Below are positions 2,530 to 23,500 of a stretch of 64,000 bases of DNA, piece after piece. Made by a program: the position numbers and the translations under genes. Below the pieces are notes generated by a model. The model did not search any database, had not been told where the DNA came from, and was given only the letters and a program-made list of their open reading frames with translations. The stretch comes from Klebsormidium nitens (taxonomy: Eukaryota > Plantae > Klebsormidiophyceae). Location: assembly GCA_000708835.1 (NCBI GenBank), contig DF237419.1, positions 8,782 to 72,781 of the forward strand, written 5' to 3'. Each line of letters opens with the position of its first letter. The first letter of the stretch is position 1.

Positions 2530-4172
2530 ATGGCTCGAGATGAAGTGCAGCGCTTCATTGGAGCAAGGGACTTGACTGTGCTCGAAGGTCGTCCTCTGGT
2601 GTTTGAGAAGAACTCTGCTTTCAAAAGCTACCTGTGCTGCAATGGGCAGATAGCAAATCTGGCTACTTGGTGCATCCCAGCTTGCTTCTGTCCGGTTGGC
2701 ACATTCTGTCCAGGCCGGTTGTATGAGCACTTCAGCTTACAGGTACAGCTGCTTCTTGAGCTGATGGTTGTCATCTGTATGTGTGCATTGATTGTTCATG
2801 TGGAGCCCCCACGGAAAATGAATACCGCTTTAGCAATTGTTTCGTGATGGTTGTGAGATCAAGCTGAATTTGCAGTGCACGGACAACTGCTTTAGCTTCA
2901 CAACGTGCTCCTATAAAATCTGGAGCAGGCAACGTGCACAGAGTACGCAAGACCAGGTTGTTGTGAATGTACAAAGAAAAGCTGAAATGAAAGCAGAGAA
3001 AAGAAGTTTGATTTTGCACTTCTTACGAAGTTTTTGAGCTCTATTGGATCGTAAATCAGGGTATTCGTGCTTTGACTTGCCATCTTCACTGGCACTCAGT
3101 CGGCGCGAATTTTGATTTATAACTCGAGCTCCCGGTCCGTATAGAAAAGCTGACAGCTCGTGGGTCGCTTCCATGCAGCTAGGTGCAGACTCCTTGAAGT
3201 ACTCCACAGCTACCAATGACTGCTGCTGTCACATTGCCTACGAGCAGAAGACTGTGCCCTTGGACAAAATCCAGGATGTGGAGCTGCAAACAGATTGCCT
3301 GCTCAGCTGTTTCGACTTGAAAAAGGTATGCATAATCTCTGCTTTACTGAAGTGTCCACCTCAGTAGCTTCGATATACGAGACGGGATGGCATCAGGCAT
3401 GTATATCTGGAACTGGCTGCCTGTCCAATTGCACATCCAATGAGCTTGTCAAAAGCTTCTGTGTTTGAAGCGACTTGATCAAAGTTCATAAGATTGCTCA
3501 CGTATACAGACGGTCATGAAAGGATGGAAAGGTGCTGCGGTGTGGGCTGCATCTGAAAGTGAGAACATCCTTGCAACATCAGTACCTTGTAGTTGTTCAT
3601 TGAAAGAGAAGCACGCCATCTAAGCTCTCTATCTGGTTCTCTGGCATTCCAAAGCAGAGGTCAATGGACTGAGGCAGCAAGAGACCAGGCTACAAAGAGG
3701 TCAGGCTCTCTTCAGCAAGCAAGGTTCCGTGTGACTGCCCCACAGGCTCGCCTCTGACGTTTACATCTCGATGCAGATCGCCGTCCAGACAGCAGGGCAG
3801 GGCGGCCCCGGCGCCGAGGTCCAGGCGGCTTTCCTGACTGCCCCAGAGGAGGTCCGTGACGCCATCCAGCTGGCAGTCAAGTGCCACCGCGAGGCACCCA
3901 CTACCGCCCCCCAGCAGCAAGCCGGCATGCTCCGGGGGCCAGCCGCCGCCAAAAATATGCTGCAGCGGCTGCAGGGTTTGGATCAGCTGGTGAAGCGGGG
4001 AGTGCTGACGCATGAGGAAGCCGGACGGCTTCGGACGCCGGTGCTGGTGGCGGATTCGGACCCCACGCAGCGGCTAGTGGAGGTGGCGGAGCTGGCTGAT
4101 ACGCAGGTCATTTCGCGGGAGGAGTTCGGGGAAGTCAAAGCCGCGCTGCTGGCGCAGATCATGAGGGCTTAG
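2530..4172 (+). CDS. Spliced gene: Cys-rich N-terminus, bacterial-type PH (bPH_2/DUF304-like) domain and two C-terminal SHOCT-like helices
   Basis: Exons ~2530-2742, 2876-(end uncertain), 3210-3325 and 3777-4172, with GT-AG boundaries. CCCHIAYEQKTVPLDKIQDVELQ is typical of bPH_2. LQGLDQLVKRGVLTHEEAGRLR and LVEVAELADTQVISREEFGEVKAALL fit the SHOCT consensus (L..L..L...G.IseEEF...K..LL). Confidence 0.7.
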
Positions 4173-6877
4173 GCCGTGTAGACGAGGGAAGAAAGATTTG
4201 ATGTTCTTGGTTTGGAAACGATGGATAGGTTGTGGTTTTCTTGAGTCCGAGTGATGAAGCTGTCAAGCTCACGGACCTTGAAGGATGCTCCACTAGATTG
4301 AGTTTGGGCCAGATATTAATCTTGGCCAGGATCTTAGCACATCAAAATCGAGATACGGTGGTCCGAAGTGAGAAAACCATGCAGCCTCGTAGCTTATCAT
4401 GTAGGATATATTAACGAGACAAATGTGCCAAACAGAATTTGAACGGCGTCCTCTATAGCTCTTCTATTTGAGATTTATGTGCGATGCGATGCGACTCGTG
4501 TCATTGATCGAAGGCCCGGTCCTGCCGCGCGCTGTGTTCAGCCAACCTAGATTCTGAACCGCTTGTCGTCACGGCGCAACTCAAAAGCACAGATAATGCA
4601 TGCAACGCTGACACACTGCAGATTGCATCGCTTCCTGGAGTCCGTTAATTTGCGGAGCTGCAATGCCTACAGGCAGATTTGATACACTACCAACTTTAGT
4701 ATGGCCGGGCCTCGCCCGATCATCAAGCTCGATCCGCATTGGGCAACGGGCTAACAACTTTTGATTACAATGATCCGTTACCATGGTTTTCTAGCCCGCC
4801 GAGGTGAACGGGTTCTACAGGGCTTTCAAGCGCGCGCTGACCACACTAGGAAAACAATAAGTGAACTTTGGCATGATGACGGATTCCCATTACTGGAAAC
4901 GAGCCCCGCGGGGTGCCTTCTGGCAGGGAAAACTGTATCTTTCACTGCCAAAGAAAGAGGATACAAAAGCAGGCGCAGGAGTTCGACAACGACGTGATTA
5001 GATAGTCGTACAATATGAATGGACAGATCCTTTTTGGCACCACTGCTTGAGCAGTTGACGTCCGTCTTCTGCCGGCATTCTCCCGTCCCAGCTGTTGTAG
5101 TGCTGCCATTCATACGAAAAGAAGGACTATAAGCGACGTCACAGATACGAGCGCAAGATTAGTACTTGCGACCACGAGAAGGAAGTACACATGCAACACG
5201 TTGTACACAAGGACGAAGTCAATCTATGTCCCTGGGACCGACCTTGAGGGACCAAGAAAGAAAGTTCTTCCAGTCAGTCTTAGTTGGACGACTGCCCCTG
5301 GTTCAGATGTCATCCTGCTTCAGCACTAACCATATGAGGTCCTGATCATGCGCCGATTTGCCTGGAGCAAAGAATGAAAGCAATGCAAAGTAAGCATTCT
5401 CAGCTTGAACCAAATTAAGCGTTCTCAAATTGAGCCCAAGAAATATAAGCTCGTTAGCAAATGTGCTTGGTATGGCCCTCACAGGGCCCAAAGAAACGAG
5501 GGCGAACTTCACTTACGTCATGATGATGCAACGCAGGAGCTGCGGCATGATGTATTACTGTATTATAATGCAATAATGCACCGTCAATTCACCATGAGGC
5601 AATTTGACATGCATGGCGTCGAACACACGGCCTCTTGGTCTTGTTTGATGCAAGCAATACGTTGTTTCGACGTTCTCGCACCTCCCACGACATCCGCTGC
5701 TTCCCCAAACGGACGTTTGATTTCCGACATTGACTCGAGTCACATGAAGGGCCTAGTACAATCATGATACGGCGTTCTGTAAGGTATACCTATACAAAGC
5801 AGCGGCTAATTAACTGCACGGCGGCCATGCAGCGCAGCGCACGCGAGCTTGGCATGCAGTTGCAGTCCTCGCGCTAATAGGATTATCGGTATTTGGCCAT
5901 AGCGTGTGTCCCGGCGATCACGGGCGCCATGATGCTAGCTAAAGCTAGTGGATAGGGACATACGAAATGCAACCCGGATGTCTATGTCAGCATGGGCGGT
6001 CAAAACTGCATGAGACCAGGCCGATTCCTAATTAGTCGGTCTGAGCTGTTGAGAGGAGATTCGCGCGCATGGTGGTTGCAACGTGCAAAGCGGAACCGTG
6101 ACTTCGTGCAGCTGTACTATACTCAATTATGATGGCGTTACGTCTCAACAAATGAGCTCATGCAAAGTCAAGAAACCAAGACGCCATGAACAATGTTCCT
6201 TCCTCACAGGCTTCGAATGCAGTTGCAAAGCCATCATGCTTCGATCGAGCCTGCATATTTTCGTAAGCAGCAACCGACATACTTTCCTGGCGCAACATAC
6301 CCTTGACCAATTTCGATGAGATAGGAGGGTAATTGCACCCATTCATGCAATTTGCGCTGAACATGACAACAGTTGTCCGCCAGAATTAGGACCCCAACAG
6401 TAGGACCTTTGCGTTTACAGTCCGTGCTTATGAAAGGAATAAGGCACCAGGCAGTTCGGATTCCGACATTGTGTATACAGGCTATGGCACAGTCCAAGCA
6501 AGCCGACGCAGACAACGTCTGACAAACACCTGGGACTGCTGCCAAAACATAGTCAAGACTCTCAAAGGAGCTGCGCTTGAGACAAAGTTCCCGTACCAGC
6601 AGTTCCCATAAATATGCTTGCTCTACTTAGTCGGGTGACAAAGGGAGACCTGCCTGTCCTACGAGTTTATCTATGCCAAAACGGAAGAGGCCAGGATCTC
6701 GAAAGGATCCTACAAATTCTGTACGACCCCTTCAGAATTTTTTATTCCAACTACTGTTCCAGCCAATTGCCACAGGAGAGTATGACATCTACCTAGAGAG
6801 ACCTATGCAATGTCCGTCTGTACTAAACAAGGCTTGATTTTGGCGTTCGCCTGGCAGTAGTCATTTGCAGGAGAACC

Positions 6878-9800
6878 TTATTGCTTCTCGACCTTCGAGA
6901 CTGGTGAAATCGTTCCAAAAGAAAGTCGAAATGTGCCGCTCGTGTTGATAGAATAGTTGCCCCCGTAAGGAGGCCTGCAAGCAACAAACTGAAAACGTTA
7001 GGGATGGAAGGTCGGGCCAACAACAAAAGGCTCGCTAAAAACAAATGTGTATCATCGAAAATGCAAAGATCGGCAGTTCTTGAAAGCAATAGCACAAGAA
7101 CCAACCATTATCAGACCATAAGTGCAACGGGTTGAGATCCACGTGATGCTGCACGCAAGAACAACTCAGGACTTGGCAAGCATGGTGCACCCCTGTCGTT
7201 ATCAATCTGCAACTTCAACTCCATGCTTCTTTAACTTGTGTACTTATAAACAAGCCGGATGGTGAAGCAGGCCTCAAAAGGGTGTCAAAAACGACCAGAG
7301 ATGCAGCTTACGTGTCCCAGTCGCCAGCCCCGTTAGTGACCACGAATTGGAGTGACGAGGCCGGTACGCGAATGACCTGTAAAAGAGATGGCACTAAGAG
7401 CACTAAACATACAGAAACCAATTTCTGCCGCTCTTGAACGTCAAGGACCGGCTGAATATTACTTGGTGCAAGCAGAAGGTAAAACCATGCACGTTTCTCT
7501 AGCTCGCAGATCCGTCCTACGAGGCCCGGCTTTCATTTGAAAGGACCTTCTTCGACGGTACCCTCTTTAGCCATCGAAAAATCTGTTGAGATCGCCCGGC
7601 TCGAAGCACCAAGCCCATCATGACCAGAGTTCGCGAACTAAAGGAATGAATGTACGAGCTCGGCTTTGCGGAGACGGAGCTCGCCGTGGTTTCCTCCGCT
7701 CATCTTTTCAGTCATTGCGGATGCAAATGTTCTGTCCTTTGAAGTCATGCAACCACTCAACAAGGAAAATTCCTTTCGGATTGATCCGATGACCAACATC
7801 GATGGCACAACGGAGCAGGAGTCCCCCACCTTGCTGTCCTGTTCGGCGTCAAAGCCAAACTGCACCCCGGGCAGTTCCGTCCAACTCCCGCCATCGGCCG
7901 CGAAGTGCAGGAAGGCCTTGTCCCAGCCGCTGTCGTACAGGAGCGTGATGACCCCGGCCTCAGGCGCCGTTTCCTCCGTGCCCGGAGCGAGGGCCTGGTT
8001 GATCGCGCGCTCCGCTTCCTGTATGGAGAGAGACGATGTGGATCCACAGAGCTGCTTTTATATGACTTCCGGGGGCCATCGGTGAAAGATCAAGGAAGTA
8101 AAAGAACACGTCGGCCCTTGAGACAAGGTCTAGGCCCTACTTAAGGACAGAGACAAGAAGAGCAAGACGCTTGAGCTGAAATACTTGACACCTGAAAGTC
8201 GCACCTCGTTCCTCGAACAACATCACACTGCGCATTGCCAACCGACTATCCCATCATGGACAAACGCGAGAACTCGCAACATCTCACATCGTTGTCGTAT
8301 CGTGCATCAGTGAAAGGCAAACGAGAAAAGGAGATACAAACCATGCGCACAAACTGCGCGGATGCGAACACAAACGATGATTCAAAGGTACATCGGAATC
8401 AAATACCCACCGTAACTTTGGTCTGGTCCTCTTCGGCAGTGCCCTCCTCTTCCTGTTCTTCACCCCTCTCTTCTCCCTCGGTCGCTTCCATCTCTGTTCC
8501 TTCCGGTACTTCCTCATCCGTTTCTTCTGGCGCCCTCTCAGTCTCCGTCTCGTCTGCCCCCTCCGTCTCTTCATTGACTGTCTCTGCGGCACCAGTGACC
8601 GGCTCCGCCGCCTCCCTAACCGACTCCTGTGCAGCCTCTGCGGGGCCGCTAACCGCCTCACTAACCACGTCCTTGGCCCCACTAACCACATCCCCAGCTT
8701 CCTTCGCTTTCTCCTCAACCTCCTCTTTGACTGTGTCTGCAGAGTCTTTGACTGCCTCGCTGGCCGCCTCTGCAGTCCCACTAACCACCTCACTAACCGG
8801 CTTGCTAACCTCCTCGGTTTCCTCATCTGCTATTCGTCCAAACACAGACGTGTCAGAGCTCGAGGCGTCCTCTTCAGCCGAGTCGTCCTCCCCTTCAGCG
8901 GTGTCAAACTTCTCGGCTGCAGAGGCAGCCAACTCCTGTGCGCCTGACTTAACACCATGTGCCGCCGACTTGACTCCCTCTACGGCCTCGCTGGTAGCCT
9001 CCTTCACTCCTTCCAAACCCTCTCCGGCCGCTTCTTTGACGGACTCGAGAACAGCCTCGGGACTCTCTGCACCAGGCTGCTCAACCTTAACTTCCTCCTT
9101 AACCTCGTCCTCGACCTCGTGCTTCACCCCCTCCTCGCTAACCTCATCCTCGACAGCCTTCTCAGCCTTGACTTCGTCCTTAACCTCACCCTTAACCTCC
9201 TCCCTACCCTCCTCTTCAGCATTCTCCTCCGACAGCGCTTCCTCTGCCGCCTCGTTCATTTCCTCGAGCCCTTCGGCAACAGCGCTCACTTCTTCAATCT
9301 TCTCAGGAACTTCCTCAGCCCTTGCCTCCAGATCCTCGCTCTCCGCATCCTCTGCCTCAGGCCCTTCAGCGGCAGCACTAGGCACCTCTGCACAGTCCTC
9401 GATGTTTGCATCTGGAATAGCCGCTTCAGCCGCCTCTAGTTCCTTCTTGACTTCCGCGCTTACAGTTGGCTCCTCTGGGATGCTCTCAGCTTTCACCTCC
9501 GAGACTGGCTCCGTCAAAGTGCTCTCCGCCGCAACTGGCTCCTCTCGGATGCTCTCCTCATTCTCATCTGGAATTGGCTCCTCAGCAGCGCTCTCAGTCT
9601 TCTCTTCTGCCACTGGAGCAGCCTCGTCTTCCCCCTCGGAAACCTGTGCTTCTGCCTGCTCCTCACTTTCTCGGCTGCTCTTCGTTGCATCTTCGGCAGC
9701 ATCCTGGACTTCTGACTTCGTGCTCCCTGCCTCTGCAACCACTCCAACAATCTCTTCTTCCTCATTTACAAAGTCAGGGACATTTGCATCCGGAATCACC

Positions 9801-12800
9801 TCCTCCGTCGCCTCTGGAAGCAACTCCGCGTCTGCTTCTGAGCTGGCTGCAGCTTTGTCCGCTGCTTCAGAAGGAATCTGGACAGGACTTGCCGCTGCGG
9901 CCTCAGCCTCGGCAGTCGCCTCGGTCTTGGGGACGAGGGTAGTGCTCAGTCCCTGAAGAAGACGAAGAACAATATGAGCACAGAGACGTTTGCAAAAAGA
10001 AAGAATTAAGCATGCTTTAAAAAAGCTGAGCATGATACTAAACAATCAACCATACCTCACTGCTGCTTACAACACAGTTCATGCCATGCGATTGGAAACC
10101 TCAGCATCATAGCCTGCGCCTGCATGCAAACTCACTAAAATCTCAATCTTCCATTCCGAGGGCCCTTCCAGCCCTGTTTCAGAAGGCCCAACGGTGGACG
10201 GGTGAAACCCTCACCGACCACTCCCTCAAAAGCTCTTGCGGTGCCACCTTTGTATCCAGGAAGTTCTGGACTTGCTTGATGGTCTCTTTCCGATCCTTGG
10301 CAAACAGCAGCTTCTTCACAAATACTTGAACCGCGGCTGCAGACCCCAGCAGCTGTAGCGCTGTCTCTGCCTGCAGAGTGAAAGGTTGTTGGCTTCCTTG
10401 CTTTGACGAAAAAGTCCATGTCTGCAGAGCAATGGTCTGTTGATCCTTGGCTGGCTGCAAGGTATGTCCCAAAATTATAAGGCATGTTCATTTTCAAGAA
10501 GTCAGCAGCGACAGTTCGAATCGGACAGACTTCCCACATGCATATTCCAGAAAAAGGTTTCATATGAAGGCCACCCTTGCGTCCAGATAATGTCGGTGCA
10601 GCTCTGAAAACTCAGCATCCAAATCCAATTGTAACCCCAGGGCGGCATTTTAACAAAGGGAGAGCGTTAGCGCAAGGTAATCTTACTGGGGGCAAAACGA
10701 AAGCATGATGATACTGGATAGAATTAATTCCCGAGTGTGATGAGAACATCTTGCACTCAAGACTTGACGTATTGCAAGTGCAGGAGAACTGACCTCTGTG
10801 AAGAGGATGAGCGATACACCAGCAGCGGCTGCGACTCCAAGTGTGGCTGGCAACACCTGCTTGTTGTCCTGCAATTCCTGCAGATCAGAGGCGAGGTCCT
10901 TGAAGGAAGGCTCCGTAACATCACCAACCCCCCAGCCTCTGACCTTTAAGCCCCTCGCTGGAACAGCAACCTTCAAACCTTTGCATATACTTTGTGTGGA
11001 GATGCAGGTAGAAATCCAACCAGATCCTACAGACGATCTAAACACGGACTAGAGCATGGGGGAGGTGCTTGAAGCGGACTTCCATAGGGTGACTGGTAAA
11101 TAAGCGGCCTAATTCTTCACAATCCTTTACAACAATCTGGTAAAGCAAGACAGCTATGATGAATGGAGCCTAAAGACAAACTATCTAGGTAGCTGTACCA
11201 AGCAGACTGTACAAAGAGAACATCAGCAAGGCCGATGGAACCACAGTAACTTGTCAACGTTTGTTCTTGAAAAGGAGAACAAACCAGAGGACAGGGTTGT
11301 ATTGTCTTCAGAAGGAGTGGATGTTGCCAGACAATCCTACAACAGCGTTTACAATGCCCTGTAGGGGCGACATTGTACACAGCGAATCGCACAATGTGTG
11401 CAGCAAGCAGCGTCTTCAGTCGGCTTCCTTCAATCACCTTGAGAGGCCTCCTAAACTGCGCGCTAATTTCACCACGACCATACCTTATGCACCGGGCATC
11501 TGCTATGGTTACTACTTGACACATGTTGCGTCGCTACGACTACAGCCTCAGTGGCATCCTCCCTCTACTCTATGGTGTGTTCCTATCTGTGTCTAGTGAG
11601 CTTGGGACCACCCTTGTCAGCAGACGGCTTCTCAAGAATCAGTCTGCAAGCAATTGGACTTGTGTAAGTAGTCGGAGCTTTTCTGAAGTAACTTAAATGA
11701 CTTCGGCATTCTATTTTGCGACCAGTGGTTGGGGATTTTCCAACCCCTGACCACTCTGGTGGGGCTCGAGGGCTTGCAAACATTGAAAGACAGCAACAGG
11801 AAGTTGTTTGAACGCGACTCTCTTAAGAAGCGGACGCTTCAGAATAAGGGACAAGGAACCAGCTTTACTCCAGAAAGAGGGGGTGAAAATGCAGAATACG
11901 CACCTGAATCGTGCTTGTGACAGCGTCCTTGATCTCGCCCAGATCTAGAGTGAACGTCTGTGGGGTTCTCCAAGGAAGCTGGCTCTCCTGAAGGCAGCAA
12001 TGTTAAAAGTCTATGAATAAAAGTGCGGGGCAAACTTTCGACGAGCACGCGAAAACTCTGCAAATAACAAGGCACCTGCAGACTTCTTCCAATTCAAGGG
12101 TCGACCTGGCACAAGAAGCAACTGCATTTACGGCTCAAATGGTCAGCATTGTGCAATTTCAACCTTTATTTCTCTGTCCTGTAACAGACCGCACCACGCA
12201 GGAGGTGCCTGGCTTCAGAAGATGTTGCGAAGGTGCTGACTGGTGACACAGAGATAAATCAGTGGTTTGGTTGAAGAGCATTGCTGGAACCACCAAAGAG
12301 AAGGCAAAAAAACGGCTATCTCAAATGGAGTAGCCGGAAGACGGCTATCTCAACTTGAGTAGCCCGAGGACGTGCCAAGGGTTTTGGAACAAAATGTCCC
12401 GAGCTCCTCTTAAAACTCACCCTCCACCCTTGCGGCCCTTGCGCTCCTCCGTTCACGACAAACACGCGGCTGTAGCCTTCCTTAGAGAGGATCTTTGCTG
12501 CCTGGGCGGCTGACGAGCCCGCGCTGCAGGAACAATTGTAACATTAGCAAGAGAAAACTTTGGAGATATGCAAAAAAGCTATTGCACCAAGTTCGGCGTA
12601 TTGACCTTTTCTTAAAACCTCAAAAGGTCAAGGACTCAACCACAATCAGCTGATCGAGAAATCTATGCGAATAGCTTCAAGCCTGCAAAGAAAACAGACT
12701 ATGCATCATCTGAAAAACAAGAGGGCGCTTTGAGGAGAAAGAATGCCGCTAAGGATGCGTAATGCCATGGTTTGATTGCCTGCTGCCATGAAGCCAAAGA

Positions 12801-14023
12801 ACTAAATTACACCATTACCAAGAGCAGATAAAGGCACCGTAAAAGGTCTTGTGGGCTTCTTGAGTAGCATGTTTTCACGTTTGAAGCACTTCACTGTAGC
12901 AGTTCACTACCCTGAACCCGTAAGCTCACTCAACATTAGGATTTCAGCGGAACCAGAGCAAATGTGCTTTACAAACCCTGTCAATGCTGCAGTTCAGTGG
13001 CTGCATTCCAAAATAGATATCGGCAGATACCAAAAGCCGCCAACAGCAAACCAGCACCCACATTCCGATTTACCTGTCCAGAAGCACAATAAGGGCGCCC
13101 TGGTCCAACGCCCTGCCCTTTACCGCTGTCCGCAGCTCTTCCTCAGCCCCCAGTCCCGCATCAGACTCCATAGCAACCGACAACACCTTCCGACCAAGCT
13201 TCGGGCTCCCCTCCTTAGCATTCTCATCCTTGCTCCTGATATCTACGAGGACCGCTCCGTCCTCTTTATTCAACCTCGCAAAGGCCTCGCTGGCACTCAA
13301 GTTCCCAGCATACCCCTTATTCATGCTCAAAAACAGAAGGATAGGGATGGAAACTGCCGCAACCCCTACGGCGACATACAGTGGGTTTGCGCTGAGGGCA
13401 TTCCCAATGTCCCCCGCTTGGGCCTTCCACTCGTCTAAAGACTTGTACCCGTCGATGAGCTCCTGGTCCCAGTAGTCCAGGGCCCACTTCACATCGGGGT
13501 TGTCCGCCCGCAGTTTGCTTAACCACGTCCCCGACTGGATGTCTGCCAGCTGCGCGCCCCAGTCGTCCAGAGACTTGTAACCGTCCTCCAACTCCTTATC
13601 CCAGTAATCGAACGCCCACTTGATGGTGGGGTTGCCCTGTCTCAGGTTTGCAAGCTGTGCCTTCCATTCATCAAGGGACTTGTACCCGTCCTCCAGCTCC
13701 ATATCCCAGTAATCGAGGGCCCACTTCACATCTTTGTTGTTTTCCCTCAAGTCTCCGAGGAATGTACCCAAGGGCAGCGTGGGGATCGCCTGTAAACTCT
13801 CAAAACCCTTAAAACCTGCGGCGGAGCACCTCACGCCAGCCCGCCTCCTGGTCGACTTCCACGAACCCAACCCTTCAGAGGCGCCCAAGCCTACGACCGA
13901 ATCGTGAGGAACTATCCTCTGCGCAGAACATGGCAGTTGCTGGGCTTCTGTAATTCTCCCCCTTGAAAAGGAGGAAGGTACAGCTAGCCCAGAGACCAGC
14001 CGCTGAGCACTGGCGGCCGCCAT
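6878..14023 (-). CDS. STR4: TROL/STR4-like thylakoid rhodanese protein with three N-terminal Trp-rich repeats, a long acidic linker and a C-terminal CBM25 starch-binding domain (~1089 aa)
   Basis: Exons (minus strand): 14023-13074, 12523-12421, 11987-11904, 10877-10794, 10370-10215, 9952-8411, 8018-7830, 7376-7312, 6974-6878. All have GT-AG ends and compatible phases. TROL-like segments: ANPLYVAVGVAAVSIP (TM1), VLVDIRS...GSP, NGGAQGPQGWRESQLPW, LGVAAAAGVSLILFTEAETALQLLGSAAAVQVFVKKLLFAKDRKETIKQVQNFLDTKVAPQELL. The C-terminus ITLLYDSGWDKAFLHF...GSWTELPGV...LQFVVTNGAGDWDTPPYGGNY matches the CBM25 pattern. Confidence 0.85.
12312..12369. repeat. Two tandem 29-bp units, each a small hairpin (GGCTA.CTC...GAGTAGCC), inside a TROL intron
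   Basis: acggctatctcaaatggagtagccggaag followed by acggctatctcaacttgagtagcccgagg. Confidence 0.8.
13418..13759 (-). repeat. Three coding repeats of ~35 aa, consensus L..LR..NP.VKWALDYWD.EL.DGYKSLDEW.AQ
   Basis: Visible in the translation of ORF 13070-14056 (aa ~100-213) and at DNA level, e.g. ccagtaatcgagggcccacttcacatc vs ccagtagtccagggcccacttcacatc. Confidence 0.95.
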
Positions 14024-14560
14024 GGCTTCCCAAGTTGTCGAAGAGAATGTGTGCAAGGTAGCTGTGAATGCTGTTTAATGTCCTTCAGCATCTGATTCTG
14101 GGGCCGGCTGAAGTACCCACTTTGCGGACTTCTTGTCCGCCAATTCCGGTACAATTGATTGCCAGATTTTGCTGCTTGCTGGCATAGGCCGTAGGTATAT
14201 GTTGTCCGAAAGCGCCTTCGGACGCTTTGCTGGACACTATGTAGCGCCAGCCTCCAGGGTACTAGTATCACGAGCAGCCTTTGAGCTTACCGGTATATGC
14301 AAAGTTTCCCCTGAAATCGAAGTTCTTTGCCTTTCTCCCCAGCTTCAATCCCTGGTACAGTCCTTCCCTGGACACCATAACACGCAGCGTGCCTCCTGGT
14401 TTGTAACTTGTAGCTGCTCTTGTAAATGCTCACACTGCAACCTTGGCCAATCCGCTTGACAACTCCCTGTCTCCTGAGCTTAGCTTTGGTTTCTTGTAGC
14501 AGTGGGAGTTCACAAGGAGTTTTGGGAAGCTAGCAATCCTGTTGCACGACACCAGGTCGG

Positions 14561-17500
14561 ATGACGGTCAAGGACGTGCTGAGATGGCGGCTGCCACTCC
14601 TGCTGGCAGTCACGCTGGGGCAGTGTTTGACTGTGAAAGCCCTCGAGAAGGACAGTTTCATGAAGATGGTGAGGGCCAACCTTGTTGCTTTAATTGTCAA
14701 AGCCTCTTGCCTCTGATTGTCTGATGAGTGTGGCGAATGCAGTATTGTGAAGATAACATGGAATATAAAGAAATTGTCACCACGCCAGCGAAGCTGGTTG
14801 TCTGAGGGGCTTGTTGACGGGCGACACATCTGGCAACAGGCTCTCTCTCCTTGCAATAGTCGGGCAATCCCATGGTTGTAAGTAAAGAACAGCTGCGTTT
14901 GCCCCCTTCCTTCAATCCTTATGAAAGGTCAGACCTACTAAACATACCTTATGGGCCCCTGAGTTTCTGACATTTATTGCACTTGTGGCCAGCTTTTCTG
15001 GTCGAAGTCTTTGAAATTCTGAAAGACAAGAAGGCCCATCCCCTGATATTCTCAGAGGAACATCGCCAATCCACATTTACAAGTTGATTGGGAGAGTTTT
15101 CAGGTTGAAGGTGTTGTCCTGGTCCTGTCAAGCTGCTTTTGTCAGGGGCCCGGTGTGTGCAATAAGGATGGCGATGAAATCATTGAGGTCATGGACCTAG
15201 AATAAGCCTGCCTTTGAGAAGCTTTCCAGCACACCTCTGAAAGGCAGTCATCCCGTTCTCGCAGTCCAAGTTGGAAACCCCCGTGCGAAACATTAAGTGG
15301 ATAGGACTCAGCGATCAGGTGAGCGTTTGATATCCCACGTCTTTCCCCCTCTTTTTTCTCCCCTCAATTTGTTGCCCTCTTGCATCAATGAGGGGTAAGC
15401 TTCACCTTCTCAAAAGACTGCACCAGCTTCAACAAGTGTGAATGGCATGTTTGGAACATCAGGACCCTTCGCTGTGTGAAACGCTGCATCAACTCGCTTG
15501 CTGGAATTAAAATCGGTATTTTTTGTTGAAAGCGGGGACATTTGTTGAAGAGAAGTAGATTTTTTATGTGTTGTCTTATCAACAGTGAATGATAGTCACG
15601 AAACACTTGGTGCTTCTGCAACCAGGCCAAGGACTGGTTTTACAGCAGTGGGTGACGAGGTTTATGAATCAATGCAGAAATGCCCGGCAGTGCAATTTGT
15701 TTTGCTTCAAGTATATATAAGTTCACCTTCTCACGCCCAGTAATAAGGTGACCTACTAAAAGATTGTTCGTCTCTTCTTCTCCAGATTGTGTTTGCACTT
15801 ACCGTGACAAACCACCTGTGGCGGAGCGAGGATGGGGGCATCTCTTGGGTGGACCAAACGGCCACAGACAAGGTGAAGCCTCCTACTTGCTTCTGCTTTC
15901 AGTAATTTCGCCAAGATCACTAGTAATCAATCACAGCTTGCACACTCCTGAACTCCAGGTTCCTGCACTGTACTCGATTGGGGTCTCTCGTCACAAGCCC
16001 TCCAGGATATAAAGCTACCTAGAAATGACCAGGACTACCGAGGATTGATTTAGTTGATTCCGACCCCCCACAGACCAGGACGAGACTCTGTTTTCGTACC
16101 TGAATGATTGACCGTTTGCTCTTGCAGTTGCTCAAGGTAATGGACGAAACACGCATCGGGTAAGTCACAAACTTGCACCATGTATGTTGGTCAGTTGGTC
16201 CTTGAACTTGAAGCAAATCTTGCCAAGGTGATGGAAATGTTAATGTGGTGCGCAGTCGCCTCAAACGGAAGTTCTGGCGGGAGGGACTCTTGCGGCGTCA
16301 TCAGCCAGCCATCCACTGCTTTTTCACAATTGCATCTTTTCACCGCTCTTGCAGCAACCTTTCACCCGTGTCCGGAGTTGCCGACATCCTTTTCTCCTGG
16401 GATGCCCCTGAGAAGGTGAGCGGCACCACTTGGAAGTCCGAAATGCAGACACCAAGAAATTCAAAGAAATCCTGCTTTTTCAACTGCGATCGTTCTTCCC
16501 CAAACGTGTAGATCTTGAACTTGATCTACCCACTTTCCAGGATTCAGCCTGTGGCTCTCGTTTCAAAATCTTTCAAGTTCGAAGGTTTTTGTATCTCCAC
16601 GCAGATCTTCTTCCGGGGCTTTGGCAACTTCCACTGGATAACGTCCGACTTTGGTCGCATGTACGAACGGGTGCTGGGGCCAATCGGACAGACCGGAATG
16701 GTCACATGGCGGCAGCACCCGACTGAAACGGAGTGGGTGCGTGCAACATTTCTTTGCAATGTCTGGTTTTCCTGTTTTCCGGAACCGTCGTCTGACGGGT
16801 CGGTCCCATTTTGATTGGACAAAATACTCTCCTTCACTCCTCTGTTTACAAAAAGCTCTGCGGATACTTCATTGATTATGTTTCTCTCTCTCCGTGATAT
16901 CATGGCAGTTCCGGTTTCCCATCCGTCTTGAGTGCTTTGAATCTGGTCCTTCCATGCACTTCAAATCTGTATCCCCTCTCTCTTAATCCCACTTGCTGTC
17001 ATAGAGGCAGGAAGTAATTAAGGAAGTGGTCTTGTCAAGATGACAAATGCTTGATTATAACCGAGGCAGTTCCATGCACAGACATAAGCTAGCAAGATCT
17101 TGAATACAATACACAGACCTTGGTCAAATGTGTGTTACAGCGCTTGGATCCTGTTGCACAGGCGATACTGAGTGATAGGAAAACAAGACGAGGTACGCTG
17201 ATGGGAATCTTGAAAGAAGAAGTTTTGTTTCTGCAGCTTCTGGTTATTGCTGTCAGATGGAGCTGTTGGGGCGCATCAGGGCCGCCCTGCGGAAATGACG
17301 TGAGTCACACTATATCAACTGTAGGATTGCGTAGGATCAAGTTCTACTTGAAAACACTCTAACTGACATGTTCAAAATTATGGCGGAGATGCGAACAAGT
17401 CTCGTCAAAGCAAACGCCGGAGGCTTGTTTGAGTTCAATGAGCGTCTGCTTATCTTCTTTGCCACAGCTGGTAAAGTCGGATCCAAATGTCAATCGCTAG

Positions 17501-20500
17501 ATGCATTCCATCGATTGTGTCAGCACATTGATGTCGCTATTGGACGAATCAACATAGGGCGGGCTTCGCTGATCTCTCTAACCTTGGTGTTCTTCTTTTT
17601 CCAACCATCCTCGAAAGTGAAGCGTGTACGCGCTTGCCTTTTCACCGCGCTAAGACAGCATTTCGTGTGCAGCTTTTCGTGACCAAGGACTTCGGACGCA
17701 CCTGGACCAACCTCACGGACGCTGCCCAGGTAAGGCCGTCCGGACTCTCCGAATGCGTCTTTCCCCGCCTGCAATTGCGTCGGGGTGTGTTCCAGGAAAA
17801 GGCGTGCCTCGCCCGAGCGCTTCCCTCTTCATATTTCACGCCATTGTCGAAGAATACTGGATAAACGTTGCTTAAGTTTCCCGTCGCAAGGACATGCCGG
17901 GTCGCCTCGCAGTCTAAACAGCCTTGCATTGCGCTCCCTGCGGGATACGAAGACGAGTTCACGTCTTTCAAACACACACCATTTTACCAGTGGCGTGGCG
18001 GAATTTTTAGTCCTTTTGGAGCTTCGTCCGACCTGGATGTGGGGAACCCTATCCTCCGACCTTATTCTCCGACCCTACTCTCCGTCCTTATCAAGCCCTT
18101 CGCCTATCTCGATACGATGTACTCTCATACTCGAGTGGGGATAGGTAACCCAACTTATTCAAGACCAGTATTCCTGTCCGGCCGCAGGATCGGATCCTGA
18201 CCTTCGTCGACTTCGACTGGGGCTGGAGCAAGGTCGGGCCGCACCCACCGGGTTACACGAAAGAAACCATCATTGCGAGCGTGTACCAGAATACTGCTGA
18301 CGTCAGGAACCACCTGGCGGGGCGCGGGAGCAACGGGTGGGACCCCTTCACGGACTTCGTCCGCAGCGACGATCTCTTTCGGACGCACCGGACCGTCGTG
18401 CGCTGCGGCGCGCAGTTCGAGGTGGCCAATGGGCTGCTCTTCTTGGTGAGCGCGTTTTGTATGGCTGCGATTGATTTTTTTGGCGAAGTAAGTTTGGTAC
18501 TTTTTGATAAGCGTGGAACGCATTTCGAAGTGGGCCAATGAGCTACTCTTCCCTGGTGAGCTTGGAGTCTCTGTACAGGTGCGTAAGACCATTGTTGAGT
18601 TGTTTTCTGCATTCGCTGTTATGCAAGGTTGCTCAATCTGGACCGACGAAGAGTTGAGGGTGCCAACGTCGAATGGTAAACGTCTCGGTCGTTCCTTCAA
18701 TTCCCCTTGCTTGCTTGTATGATTGCGTGTTTGATTGACTGTTGGAGCGATGGATGCTTAAGCTCTGACCTATTTCTTACTATTGAGAGGCTCCTTCTAG
18801 GTCCTTCGAAACCTGTTTGAAACCCAGCTCCGCTTGTGCTTCGGACATCAGCCTCGCTCCCGCCGCTTATCCTCCGGTATGCGTTTCTGACGATCCCCTT
18901 ACTCCGAAACATCGAACCTTACATCTTTTTAACACCGGCTGTCGTCGTGCTTGACCAGGGCTCGTTGTCACTGAAATCAGTATTCCAATGTTTTTGCCTT
19001 GGAACATCTCCAATTTCTTCAGAGTCTCTTTGCAGGCCGTAGCTGCACATTGTCGGCAGACTGGCCAGGCTGAGCCGCCCCCAAATAACGGCGTCAACCT
19101 TTTCACCAGCAGCGACTATGGCGCAACGTTCACCGAGTCATGCTTCCCAGGTGCGTACGTCACGCTTGCTTACTGTTCGTAGACAAAATCAGCTCCAGCT
19201 TAGAGAATGGTCTCGCATATGTGAACGCTGGAAGGTTGCATCCCACGAACTGACGTTGCTTTCCGATGCAGTCCTTTTCTACTGATCACTCCACACTCCG
19301 TGACACGGACTCCTTTTCCTGATGCTTTTTAACCTGGTCAATTGCCCCTGCCGGGCAGTCAGCGTCTCAACCAGACAGGATATTGCAGAGCTCAGGGGGC
19401 GACTGTGGAGCATCCTCCGCGTTTATTAGATCACTTATTGCTTCTTGTTCTTATTTTTCGCTGACACCCAGAGGACTCCTTTGCTCATTCTTCGTTGTCA
19501 TCTCGTAATTGCTGCTCCTCACCCGCTTCTCCCCTGCTCTCCGCCCACTCACTTTCGTCCTCCGTTCTGCTCCTTCTCCTTCACAGACTTGCACCGCAAT
19601 GAACCGCTAAGCCGGCCCTGCTAACCCTCTTTCGTCTCCCTCCCAAACTCTCTGGGCGACCAGGACTGCAGCGCATCAAAGCCAACAACGAAAAAGTGCT
19701 CTTCTTTCCCTTTCTGATCCGCTAGCCATTCTGCTAAACCTTCTGTCCTCTCCCTCACAGTTTCGCAACATTGAAACTCGATAACGCTGAAATGTCAAAC
19801 CCCCACTCTTCGTTTCCTTTCTATCCGGTAACTTCCTCTGCTAACCCGCTTTTTTCTTCCCCCCAGACTCGCTGGGCGAGCAGGGTTACAGCGTGGTCGA
19901 AGCAAACAACGACACCGTTTTCGTCAACGCCGCGTACTCGCAGCAGGGCCGCACGGGCCTGTACGGCAACCTGTACAGTTCGGACGCCCGCTTTACGCTG
20001 TACGGACTCAGCCTCAAGGACAACCACCGGACGGCGTCCGCAGCGGTTGACTTCATGCGCGTGCAGGGTTTGCCGGGTGGGTATCACATTCTGGTCGGAC
20101 GTTAAACTTGTTTGAATTGCCATTTTCTGGATGTCAGAAAACCTCGTGGTGACGTCATTGAGACGTCGGACGGCTCATCGGCTTTGTAAGGATGGAGGTC
20201 CACGTCAGAGTTGTTTGAATTGCGATTTTTGGATGTCAGCAAAGTGCGTGGTGACGTCATTGAGTTTGCGCATGGCTCATCAGCAGTGTAACGATGTAAG
20301 TTCTCACCAGGATGAGGAGTTCAACTTTGAAGCTTCTGAACTTGTGAAACGCCCTGCAGCGAAGTGTGATAGATGCATTTCTGGTTGCACATCTTATTGC
20401 GATACAGAAAATACTGATTTCCTGTTGTGTTCTTCGAAAAGTTGAAAGGTGGCCCTCTTTCGCACAGGCACATACGTGGTCAATCAGGTTGACTCCGGCA

Positions 20501-23500
20501 ATGGGGGTCGCCTGCCTCCGGGCGCGCCCCATAAGGGCGACTCAAGCGCCCCCAACCTGGTGACGAAAATAAGCTTCAACGGGGGTTCCAGCTGGAGCCT
20601 ACTGACCCCCCCGAATGAGGTGGGTTTGTGGTTTTATCAACCTGGGCTGGTTGGCTGGTATGGGCTTGGTTTGAGAATGGCGCTTCGTGCAATGGCCGGT
20701 GTTCAACTCTCAAATAATATCCCCTTTGGCACGGTATGGTCGGGTCTTTTCTCGAGGACAGACCTTTGTACAATGACTGCTTTTGCGCAGGACAGAAGCG
20801 AAACCCCAGGGAGTTCAGCTTCTTCCGACGTTTGATCGATGATTACTCGAACCTTGCGCTCCTCCGTTTACTTGTACAGAAACGTGGTTATCAGGTTCCT
20901 TACTGCACATTCGCTCAAACCTGGCCGCCTGACCCGTTTTCGATTGGAACCGATCGCAGAATCTGGTCGAATTTGCAGAACGTGGGCCGGTCGATGGTAG
21001 CATTCCGGTGATCGAAGGGTTCAAGTTCTACGCATCGGGCAAAGTTCTGCGATCGGCTCAAATCAGACTCGGGTCTGGCGGCCAGGTTTGACCGAATGTG
21101 CAATATCCAGCACGGGAATTTGAGCACGAAGTGCACAAACTGATCGCGACCACGGCGGATTTCTGAAGTACGAAAGTTTGCGGTAACATCAGGTGTGGCT
21201 CCATGGGGAAGTTTCCATCAACCCCTGACCCGGTTCTCCACAAACGTAGGCTCCAGACTGAAGAGCTAACACAACCCAAAACGCATTAAGGTGTGAATAG
21301 GACCTTTCCTTCCTGCAGGACTCCAGTGGTGTGCCCATTGTGTGCCCCGGTTGTACGCTCCACTTGCACGGCGCGAGCTCCTGGCAGGGCAGCGGCAACA
21401 TGCCGGGCTTCGCGTTCGTGTATTCACACCCGTCCGCGCCCGGCGTGCTCATGGGAACCGGGAACGTCGGCCAGTATTTGTACCAGGTCAGGGGGCTTCT
21501 TCTCGATTCCCAGACATCTCGTGTGCTTTGCCGTCGACTTCAACATTGTCTGCACTGCCTATGGGTGGGGAAGAGAAATTGTGTGCCAGCCAAACCAAGA
21601 ATCCCCACCTACAGGCAGTGCCCCATCAGCAGCCCACACAGAGCCTGCTCATACAGCGGACGGGACAGATTATGGCTCGCACACTGAAAACCAGCTCGTA
21701 AAACTCCTTTTGTTTGTCTCAATGTCTCATGTGCTTTGAATTATATCTCGTCTGCGTCGTTATCGTCTGCTTGATTTCGATGGTGCTAAAGACTGCGAGA
21801 GAACGAGGCGGGAAAGCTTCCGAGGGCGACTGTCGCCTCGTTGGAATTGACGGAAAGGGGCCGGTAGATTTCACCAGGCCGAAGGTCGTTCTTCAATTCA
21901 GCGGAAGAAGTTCTTGAGACTCGTTAACACTTCGTAGTGGTACGGAGTTCCTGTGCCCCCGTTTCGAATCTATTATTATACCCCACTTGAGTCAGATTTG
22001 TTCACAGTAAGACACCCTAGGCAGGGGTTTCCCAAGGATCAAACGGACAAAACGGACTCGAAGTTTCAATAATAACTTTTGAGCTTCTCATTGCTGTACT
22101 CAAACAAAGAATGGGACGCTTTGCTATCCTTTTCAAGTACGTCTTCTCCAATCTGAGAGCATGGAATGCAAAAGCCGCTCAAAAAGAGTGAGCCGCTTCC
22201 AACCTTTGAATGACGCTTTTGCAGAACGGGGAGGTGAACACGTACGTGTCGGGGGATGCGGGGCGCACGTGGATTGAGGTTGCGCGGGGTGCCCACATCT
22301 ACGAGTACGGCGACTATGGCGGGATCATTGTAATGACCAAGCACTATCTCAACGGGCCCACTAACGAGGTCATGTGAGTCAGGCCGCAAAACTTACATTT
22401 CGGCGCGGCTGTTCGATGACAATACATCCCTCTTTTTCGCTGCGGGCAGTGGGACTTGTATTCTGACTGGGCCTGACAGGTCACCGGCGTTTTAAAATGC
22501 CGGACCTTTTCAACAAGAAGAATTTTGTGGTAAGCGTCAGCTCCTGCAGATCTTGTGAGCAGTCAAAGTCTGTCCAACCATCGACAGGATCCACCACGTT
22601 CTAACAGTTCTAGAGGACCATGATTCCATTCCAGTCTCGTCGCGCAGAAGCCTGTTTCATTTCCGGTCTTTCGTGACTTCAGGTCCTCTGCCAGGGTTCT
22701 CAAGCAAGGCAGGCACACCCTCAGAACTACGTTATGCAGACAAGTTTCCACTGGGTTATATAAGTCTATAAGAAATACATCCCTCTCTCTTCAGAACACC
22801 ATTACTAGGTCGAATGCAAATGCCAGTTGTTTGCGCAATCTGCATCAGGGCTCTCGTCCCCATTTCGGCCGAGCTGGTCTCCCCAGTTTTACTCCTAGTT
22901 CCAAAGGCATGCTGCTGCTTCTTACGAGCTATCTGGAACCCAGCAGTTTCATCTGACATGAAGTCCCCGGGTGGTCTTCCCCAGGAACTCAGTTGACGAG
23001 GGATTAGGCACCCACTTGCGGACTCCCTGAATGCACGCTTGAACTCCCGTACTCCGCCGAGCAAGCGCTTCCGAGTCTTCTGATCCTACTTCCGTTTTCC
23101 AGTAACCATAACCTCAATCCGAGTTAGTTCTCGTAACCCTGCAGACTCGTTCTTTTTTAACCAACTCCGAGTCTCCGGTTGGTCTTCCCCAGGTTCTCGC
23201 TCGACGAGGGCATCAGCTGGGAGGTCTCCCAGTTCGCAGAACTCCCGTTTGCGCTATTGAAGCCCCGTAGCAAGCGCTTCCGACTCTTCTAGTTCTACTT
23301 CCAGTTCCCAGCCACTCTCGATTGTCCATTTTTTCAAATCCAGCAAACTCGTACCTTTTCATGTTGCTGACTTCAAGTCCCCGGTTGTCTCCCCCAGGTA
23401 CTCCCTTGACGAGGGCTCAGCTGGGAGATCTCTCAGTTCCCGATTGCGCCGCTGGACCTCCATACCTTACCAAACAAGCGCTTCTTGGATGTTTTCGTCT

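Follow-up and report, generated by a model that had tools for sequence, protein, structure and literature searches.

A candidate thylakoid-starch tether of the TROL family and its conserved truncated isoform in Klebsormidium nitens

Results

Organisation of the locus

We analysed a gene with a TROL-type membrane core on scaffold DF237419.1 of the alga Klebsormidium nitens. It lies in a stretch of 64,000 nucleotides (nt; positions 8,782 to 72,781 of the scaffold), which we call the window and to which all K. nitens coordinates refer; the window is identical to the scaffold across the whole gene. On the minus strand, nine exons join into 3270 nt that form a 1089-codon open reading frame (ORF) with no internal stop codon, and all introns are of the GT-AG type. 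A preliminary description of this DNA had proposed a nine-exon model of about 1089 amino acids (aa); the model is borne out with the frame open throughout, and the four junctions that it quoted (10215>9952, 8411>8018, 7830>7376 and 7312>6974) are exact. The architecture that it described is also real: a TROL-type membrane core to which Trp repeats of no known family, an acidic linker and a CBM25 module are joined.

Exon 1 (13074..14023, aa 1-316) encodes a transit-peptide-like N-terminus, the Trp repeats, a first transmembrane segment (TM1) and the N-terminal part of a rhodanese domain, and exon 2 (12421..12523, aa 317-351) encodes the active-site loop and the C-terminal part of that domain. 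The segment past the rhodanese domain, ESQLPW...DLGEIKDAVTSTIQ, is encoded by exon 3 (11904..11987, aa 352-379), which ends in phase 0. Exon 4 (10794..10877, aa 380-407) starts with ELQDNKQVLP and continues into a second transmembrane segment (TM2), while exon 5 (10215..10370, aa 408-459) contains the conserved TROL core helix, LQLLGSAAAVQVFVKKLLFAKDRKETI...FLDTKVAPQEL. The last TROL-homologous residues, GLSTTLVP, are found at the start of exon 6 (8411..9952, aa 460-973), and the rest of this exon encodes the polyacidic linker. Exon 7 (7830..8018, aa 974-1036) completes the linker and opens the CBM25, of which it encodes the first half with His1011 and Trp1019; the middle strands of this module with NGAGDW(1056)D are in exon 8 (7312..7376, aa 1037-1057/8), and its C-terminal strands and the stop codon in exon 9 (6878..6974, aa 1058-1089). 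An AATAAA signal lies about 130 nt downstream of exon 9.

The transit-peptide-like N-terminus covers aa 1 to about 66 and ends at a cleavage-like VRC|SAA; its 66 residues include 12 Ser/Thr, 9 Arg/Lys and 3 Asp/Glu. Hydropathy analysis shows two strong hydrophobic segments, TM1 at aa 214-234 (window 13384-13322) and TM2 at aa 388-405.

An orthologous locus and purifying selection

A search with exon 1 retrieved two proteins that are closely related to the K. nitens protein, a Trinity ORF of K. subtile (P0001, 93% identical) and an ORF from a JGI metagenome (P0002, 70%). The metagenome contig behind P0002 (L001) carries an orthologous locus that is about 70% identical to that of K. nitens, with 87% DNA identity in exon 3. 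All nine exons are present on L001 in the same order and phases, with canonical splice sites and a stop-free ORF of 1206 aa. The L001 protein has four Trp repeats, and its linker exon (598 aa, L001:15258-17051) is about 46% identical and also open. Metagenome scans with an exon 7 profile and an exon 1 profile yielded no confirmed loci, an exact look-up found no encoding contig on record for P0001, and the ORFs that JGI had called on L001 added no useful members of the cluster.

We compared K. nitens with L001 by the Nei-Gojobori method and obtained ratios of nonsynonymous to synonymous substitution rates (dN/dS), with synonymous sites saturated (dS > 1), of 0.04 for the Trp repeats, which are the most constrained part, 0.12 for exons 4-5 and also for the CBM25, 0.14 for TM1 plus the rhodanese domain, 0.20 for the transit peptide and 0.28 for the linker. 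Every part, the low-complexity linker included, is under purifying selection as protein. Because L001 keeps the exons, the phases and the open frame, and because dN/dS is 0.04-0.28 in every part, the gene model stands beyond chance.

The membrane core aligns with single-chain TROL proteins

The rhodanese domain (PF00581) scores 31 bits at aa 250-345 of the spliced product of exons 1-3 (P0016), above the cutoff of 22.2, which bears out the preliminary description for this domain. The position of the catalytic Cys is occupied by Asp316 (LLD|SAGSS), and Asp is found there in 8/8 aligned sequences; this column was assigned from the Pfam alignment offsets and established knowledge of rhodaneses. 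A phmmer search with exon 1 against a library of 1.84 billion representative proteins gave 14 matches, among which only P0002 spans the Trp repeats; the others cover only TM1 and the rhodanese domain. The homologues with complete C-termini (P0003 from Mesotaenium, P0004, P0007 and P0011) are single chains of 436-508 aa, and these chains end in the FNR-binding signature Y.DLKPP[ST]SP.

The alignment of the K. nitens model to the single-chain TROLs is unbroken from TM1 through the exon 5/6 junction and takes in the rhodanese domain, TM2 and the core helix as well as the exon 3/4 junction. At the exon 3/4 junction, TSTIQ|ELQDNKQVLPATLGVAAAAG corresponds to TSTVEDNKALLPASLGVAAAAG of the TROL homologues, and at the exon 5/6 junction, REWS|GLSTTLVP corresponds to DDIKEIGSALLP. 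The latter alignment confirms the argument, made earlier from the residues EWS|GLSTTLVP, that the acidic exon belongs to this gene. No gap interrupts exon 5 (core helix LQxLGSAA..KKLLFAxDRKxT..FLDTKVAP) in its alignment with all TROL homologues, and this exon also gives a weak, sub-threshold CAAD-like match (PF14159, E 0.014). TM2 and the helix after it weakly resemble a CAAD/CURT1-type domain in other family members as well, with PF14159 E-values of 0.06-0.1 in the TROL homologues P0007 and P0008.

The ITEP FNR-binding motif (..Y.DLKPP[ST]SP..) is absent from the models of K. nitens and L001, as judged by regular-expression and alignment searches. By its core, the protein classifies as a member of the TROL family, yet it fails the feature that defines the known function of TROL; since the motif is missing from both Klebsormidium-type orthologues, membership is limited to the core. 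A trebouxiophyte protein from Symbiochloris irregularis (P0008, KAK9813464.1) likewise has the TROL core (TM1, Asp-rhodanese, TM2 and core helix) and no FNR-binding motif, which suggests that the core is older than the ITEP tail and that the tails are lineage-specific.

The acidic linker and the C-terminal CBM25

Exon 6 encodes 514 aa, of which 27% are Glu and 17% Ala, with a net charge of -130 and only three aromatic residues, and this linker is probably disordered. It carries conserved islands and a recurring [IL]PDAN[IV] motif, of which K. nitens has four copies (two perfect, two degenerate) and L001 six, about 40-50 aa apart. The motif looks like a multivalent short linear motif.

The Pfam check for CBM25 gave a partial result. 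Exon 7 matches CBM_25 (PF03423) at profile positions 6-39 of 106 with an E-value of 4.6e-5, and its score of 24.1 bits is below the cutoff of 27.3. When the two-species profile of exon 7 was compared with the PDB, only CBM25 structures were matched (2c3v with E 5e-8, 2laa and 2lab). Once spliced, exons 7-9 can be aligned collinearly and over their full length with a verified module, namely the first of the CBM_25 domains in an alpha-amylase of Streptomyces (on L005); identity is 36% across 95 aa, with a score of 55 bits, and the amylase itself scores 254.8 bits on PF03423. His1011, Trp1019 and Trp1056 of the K. nitens protein align with H26, W34 and W74 of 2c3v; His26, Trp34 and Trp74 of BhCBM25 reportedly form the sugar-binding platform. 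Because the spliced exons align end to end with a verified CBM_25, we consider the C-terminus to be a complete CBM25 and a putative alpha-glucan binder, and its collinearity across two introns also supports those two junctions.

The CBM25s of bacteria (Bacillus halodurans amylase G-6, 2c3v; Paenibacillus beta/alpha-amylase, 2laa; the Streptomyces amylase on L005) share with the Klebsormidium module a length of about 95 aa, the His/Trp/Trp platform and NGxGxWD. Unlike them, the Klebsormidium module is split over three exons, has Thr-Pro-Pro in place of the Asn after WD, and is part of a membrane protein that has no catalytic glycoside-hydrolase domain.

A conserved alternative terminal exon and a short isoform

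GenBank splits the locus into two hypothetical proteins of 382 aa and 722 aa. The first (GAQ88923.1, KFL_004700050; P0016), with which the K. subtile ORF P0001 clusters, is identical to the window over exons 1-3 and continues with Thr-Asp-Ser-stop from an extra exon that starts at window 11643, so that its coding sequence ends at 11632. It comprises the transit peptide, the repeats, TM1 and the rhodanese domain, without TM2, the linker and the CBM25. The second product spans window 11085-6878 and ends at the stop codon of exon 9; by length arithmetic, it corresponds to a 12-codon leader (MEVRFKHLPHAL, 11050..11085, minus strand) joined to exons 4-9 (710 aa). The public model therefore appears to use the same exon 4-9 junctions as ours and to differ only on the joining of exon 3 to exon 4.

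The extra exon is located within intron 3, on the minus strand at 11340..11643 (3' end approximate). In a block of about 300 nt that stops at a conserved TGTAA, K. nitens and L001 are about 75% identical here, while the other intron 3 sequence cannot be aligned. Past the stop codon, it consists of about 290 nt of conserved non-coding sequence. A coding function of this exon was considered and rejected, as stop codons occur in all frames in both species. An Rfam search of window 6500-14500, the alternative exon included, gave no match. The 382-aa product and the independent Trinity ORF of K. subtile both end in TDS-stop, and a Logan contig (L003, run SRR10920916, 98% identical to L001) has exons 1-3 spliced to at least 221 nt of the alternative exon, in which no further splicing is seen; we take this contig as RNA-derived because it is spliced. 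From these features, we read the intron 3 element as a terminal exon that is used alternatively and is polyadenylated at a site of its own. The 382-aa isoform is real, since it is backed by transcripts in related species and its terminal exon is conserved. Transcripts that end before the acidic exon, which the preliminary description had named as evidence against its single-gene reading, thus exist in part, namely for the 382-aa isoform in K. subtile and in a third species.

One gene or two

The existence of the short isoform raises the question of whether exons 4-9 belong to the same gene. The two-gene reading follows GenBank: a 382-aa single-pass protein with Trp repeats and a rhodanese domain, and an independent 722-aa protein, derived by fission of an ancestral TROL gene. 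It agrees with the annotated pair of KFL_004700050 and the adjacent 722-aa gene, with a terminal exon of the first gene that is kept over about 300 nt with its TGTAA and is seen in RNA assemblies of related species, and with the failure to find a full-length record. The proposed start of the second gene fits it poorly, however. In a closer relative (L004), the frame of the 12-aa leader is shifted and its GT donor is gone, and in L001 nothing similar to it is found; the leader is thus probably a prediction artefact. Upstream of exon 4, neither K. nitens nor L001 has an in-frame ATG, and exons 4-5 are constrained coding sequence without any Met. The first Met downstream of exon 4 is deep in the linker and at non-homologous sites in the two species (aa 691 vs 604). 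An unspliced 5' extension of exon 4 was also considered as a start and rejected; the frame is open for 57 codons and contains no ATG. In addition, a transit peptide would be missing from the 722-aa product, yet TM2 and the core helix are a thylakoid module and starch is plastidial. Finally, the end of exon 3 and the start of exon 4 are both in phase 0 and abut exactly where the single-chain TROLs run continuously.

Because the leader is not conserved, because exons 4-5 have neither a start codon nor a transit peptide of their own, and because the single-chain TROLs align across the junction, we favour a single gene with two isoforms, one long (1089 aa) and one short (382 aa), as the probable arrangement and regard two separate genes as unlikely. 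The claim of the preliminary description that one polypeptide carries all these domains would then hold for the long isoform, and here it rests on comparative inference. The K. nitens reference annotation probably mis-splits the locus.

The Trp-rich repeats

The Trp-rich repeats (aa ~93-205, window 13747-13409) consist of three 35-aa units that start at aa 95, 131 and 175. The copy number of the unit (35 aa = 105 nt) is three in K. nitens and K. subtile and four in the L001 lineage (L001:10271-10708), and units within one gene show about 80% DNA identity. Only Klebsormidium-type proteins in the 1.84-billion-protein library cover the repeats. No Pfam or PDB family was matched by the repeats, and a profile search of the PDB returned only designed coiled coils with E-values of 0.01 or worse. 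AlphaFold2 predicts the repeat region to be helical, with a mean predicted local distance difference test (pLDDT) score of 48.6 that is too poor for a fold search.

The preliminary description had raised possible binding of Rubisco by the repeats, and this is not supported. The Rubisco-binding motif of Chlamydomonas, [D/N]W[R/K]xx[LIVA], has no strict match in either orthologue; only the near-misses EWKAQL, DWGAQL and EWKAQA are found in the repeats. The C-terminus of the protein, where such a motif may also be expected, reads ...KVEKQ. The published motif, [D/N]W[R/K]xx[L/I/V/A], is usually multi-copy and C-terminal and is specific to the Rubisco of Volvocales (PMC7673724), so likeness to it predicts little in Klebsormidium. 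With no strict match, Rubisco binding is pure conjecture.

Other features of the window

Intron 2 contains a 29-nt unit in 2.1 tandem copies (window 12312-12372, 87% match), which suggests no function. According to the GenBank calls, the upstream neighbour is a Sortilin/VPS10-domain protein (about 14561-24023, plus strand, 838 aa, product cut at the locus end) and the downstream neighbour is a small bPH_2-domain protein (about 2530-4172, plus strand, 251 aa); both are unrelated to the gene described here.

Discussion

A thylakoid-starch tether as the favoured explanation

We favour the explanation, to which we assign a probability of roughly 0.55, that the locus is a single gene of the TROL family, of which the long isoform would bind starch and a truncated isoform is conserved. 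TROL has two transmembrane segments, with the N- and C-termini in the stroma and the rhodanese domain in the lumen (PMC10604066). Under this topology, the repeats and the CBM25 would both face the stroma, as had been argued in the preliminary description. The long isoform (exons 1-9) would be imported by means of its transit peptide and inserted by its two transmembrane helices like TROL, which would place a catalytically dead rhodanese domain in the lumen. The N-terminal stromal arm would consist of the three conserved, helical Trp-rich repeats as a putative protein-binding module, and the C-terminal stromal arm of the polyanionic, presumably disordered spacer of about 510 aa with its [IL]PDAN[IV] motifs, followed by the glucan-binding CBM25. 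Charge repulsion would keep the acidic spacer extended, so that the CBM25 could reach glucan tens of nanometres from the membrane, and starch or nascent glucan would be tethered to the thylakoid surface. The membrane core would serve as a docking platform on which the stromal cargo module has been exchanged, with a CBM25 where land-plant TROL has the ITEP motif. Alternative polyadenylation in intron 3 would give the 382-aa isoform and could set the amount of the tether.

Several observations weigh against this explanation. Apart from the GenBank split of the locus, all RNA-derived ORFs retrieved for exons 1-3 (K. subtile and L003) end in the alternative exon. Neither a transcript nor a protein record was found in which exon 3 is joined to exon 4, and this absence of a full-length record is uninformative rather than supportive. 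In the CBM25, exon 7 alone is about 3 bits under the Pfam cutoff, and exons 8 and 9, singly or joined (53 aa), have no Pfam or PDB match. A third, weak hydrophobic helix at aa 411-432 (Kyte-Doolittle hydropathy 1.4), which is CAAD-like, could in principle alter the topology; were it membrane-spanning, both the topology known from TROL and the side of the membrane on which the N-terminal repeats lie would differ. Taken together, the earlier interpretation is supported in its architecture and in the TROL homology across the junctions, is not supported in Rubisco binding, and is weakened in its single product by the transcripts that end after exon 3.

In Klebsormidium, starch grains are reportedly arranged along the pyrenoid-traversing thylakoids, and a membrane-anchored carbohydrate-binding module would explain this arrangement. 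In Arabidopsis, the sites at which starch granules begin to form are set by the thylakoid-associated protein MFP1 and its partner PTST2 (PMC10801857). The anatomy of Klebsormidium would be equally compatible with a role of the MFP1/PTST2 kind that does not depend on the pyrenoid.

Comparison with known systems

The family membership of the protein is limited to TROL, by its core, and CBM25. It shares with TROL (Arabidopsis At4g01050; Mesotaenium ME000133S00540, which is P0003) the predicted order of parts, with a transit peptide, a stromal N-terminal region, TM1, an Asp-rhodanese domain, ESxLPW and TM2, followed by the helix LQxLGSAAxxQ..KKLLFAxDRKxTI..FLDTKVAPxEL and G.xxxL.P, and in both proteins a binding module is positioned at the end of a flexible C-terminal tail, which faces the stroma in TROL (PMC10604066) and would do so in Klebsormidium. 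The two proteins differ in the PEPE/ITEP FNR-binding motif, which the Klebsormidium protein lacks, in the tail, which is about 510 aa of polyacidic sequence plus the CBM25 in Klebsormidium and about 80-100 aa in TROL, and in the N-terminal region, where the three (in L001 four) orphan Trp-rich repeats are found in no other homologue retrieved. Klebsormidium also differs from TROL in its conserved truncating isoform that ends past the rhodanese domain.

RBMP2 of Chlamydomonas (Cre09.g416850) is likewise a membrane protein with long repeat-bearing regions and a rhodanese domain without the catalytic Cys, and it is located on the pyrenoid tubules, where it tethers another pyrenoid phase to membranes. 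Unlike the Klebsormidium protein, RBMP2 uses [D/N]W[R/K]xx[LIVA] motifs and has no starch-binding module. RBMP2 was not among the phmmer matches of exon 1, a search in which no direct comparison of the cores was made. SAGA1 and SAGA2 are also long proteins with a starch-binding module, and they position starch relative to another chloroplast structure. They are soluble and of the coiled-coil type, with a predicted starch-binding domain, which belongs to CBM20, and Rubisco-binding motifs, whereas the Klebsormidium protein is predicted to be membrane-anchored and has a CBM25, a probably disordered acidic spacer and no strict Rubisco-binding motif. The pair of MFP1 and PTST2, the latter with a CBM48, is similar in function to the tether proposed here. 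A thylakoid-associated anchor linked to a carbohydrate-binding module places starch relative to thylakoids in Arabidopsis (PMC10801857) and would do so in Klebsormidium, but Arabidopsis uses two proteins, the coiled-coil MFP1 and PTST2, and the proposed Klebsormidium tether would be a single chain on the unrelated TROL scaffold.

Pyrenoid tether and conventional TROL as alternatives

A more specific explanation, a special case of the thylakoid-starch tether with a stated place and partner, is that the long isoform acts in the pyrenoid-traversing thylakoids, where the repeats would bind Rubisco and the CBM25 would bind the starch sheath, so that one protein would combine RBMP2-like and SAGA-like roles. 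Starch along the traversing thylakoids is the expected product of a membrane-anchored starch binder, and Chlamydomonas makes such contacts with RBMP2, which has transmembrane segments and a dead rhodanese domain, and with the CBM-bearing SAGA1/2. With a dN/dS of 0.04, no part of the protein is more constrained than the repeats, which are also lineage-specific and predicted to be helical, and every repeat has EWKAQL or DWGAQL, which differ from the Chlamydomonas motif at a single residue. None of these is a strict match to [D/N]W[R/K]xx[LIVA], however, and the Chlamydomonas motifs occur in basic disordered contexts, in contrast to the acidic, predicted-helical repeats here. Mesotaenium is a pyrenoid-bearing zygnematophyte, and its TROL homologue P0003 has an FNR-type tail; on that basis, the architecture would not simply track pyrenoids. 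This explanation also hinges on the predicted exon 3-4 junction, and we regard it as rather improbable, a little more so than the two-gene reading. In an extended form, which we hold to be slightly less probable again, the long isoform would organise the pyrenoid periphery, with the repeats binding Rubisco or a streptophyte linker, the CBM25 orienting the starch, and polyadenylation in intron 3 switching the starch arm on or off. If that were true, a structural protein of the pyrenoid would be known for the first time from a streptophyte alga, and its scaffold would be that of TROL and not any Chlamydomonas component.

The least probable explanation, and a very doubtful one, is a conventional TROL that tethers FNR via a non-canonical motif in the acidic tail (e.g. 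[IL]PDAN[IV]) with the CBM25 as an accessory: the membrane core is clearly TROL-like, and the motif is kept in a fast-evolving linker with a copy number of 2-4 to 6, which is typical of a functional short linear motif, but Y.DLKPP[ST]SP is absent from both Klebsormidium-type orthologues while present in P0003, P0004, P0007 and P0011, and the known FNR-binding motif is Pro/Ser-rich rather than acidic.

Implications

A literature search found no paper on this architecture or this locus. In practical terms, our analysis flags a probably mis-split K. nitens gene and a conserved isoform that appears to arise by alternative polyadenylation. The thylakoid-starch tether that we favour would provide a testable candidate for the factor that positions starch with respect to the thylakoids in this alga, from which no pyrenoid protein is known. 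Should the protein indeed act in the pyrenoid, a membrane-starch tether made of a single polypeptide would be at hand from an alga related to land plants, which would be relevant to building pyrenoids in crops. TROL has been known only as the thylakoid docking site of FNR, and here the same core carries a putative starch-binding module in an early-diverging streptophyte. This suggests that the TROL core may serve for docking at the thylakoid in general, and that one stromal cargo module replaced another on it as streptophytes evolved.

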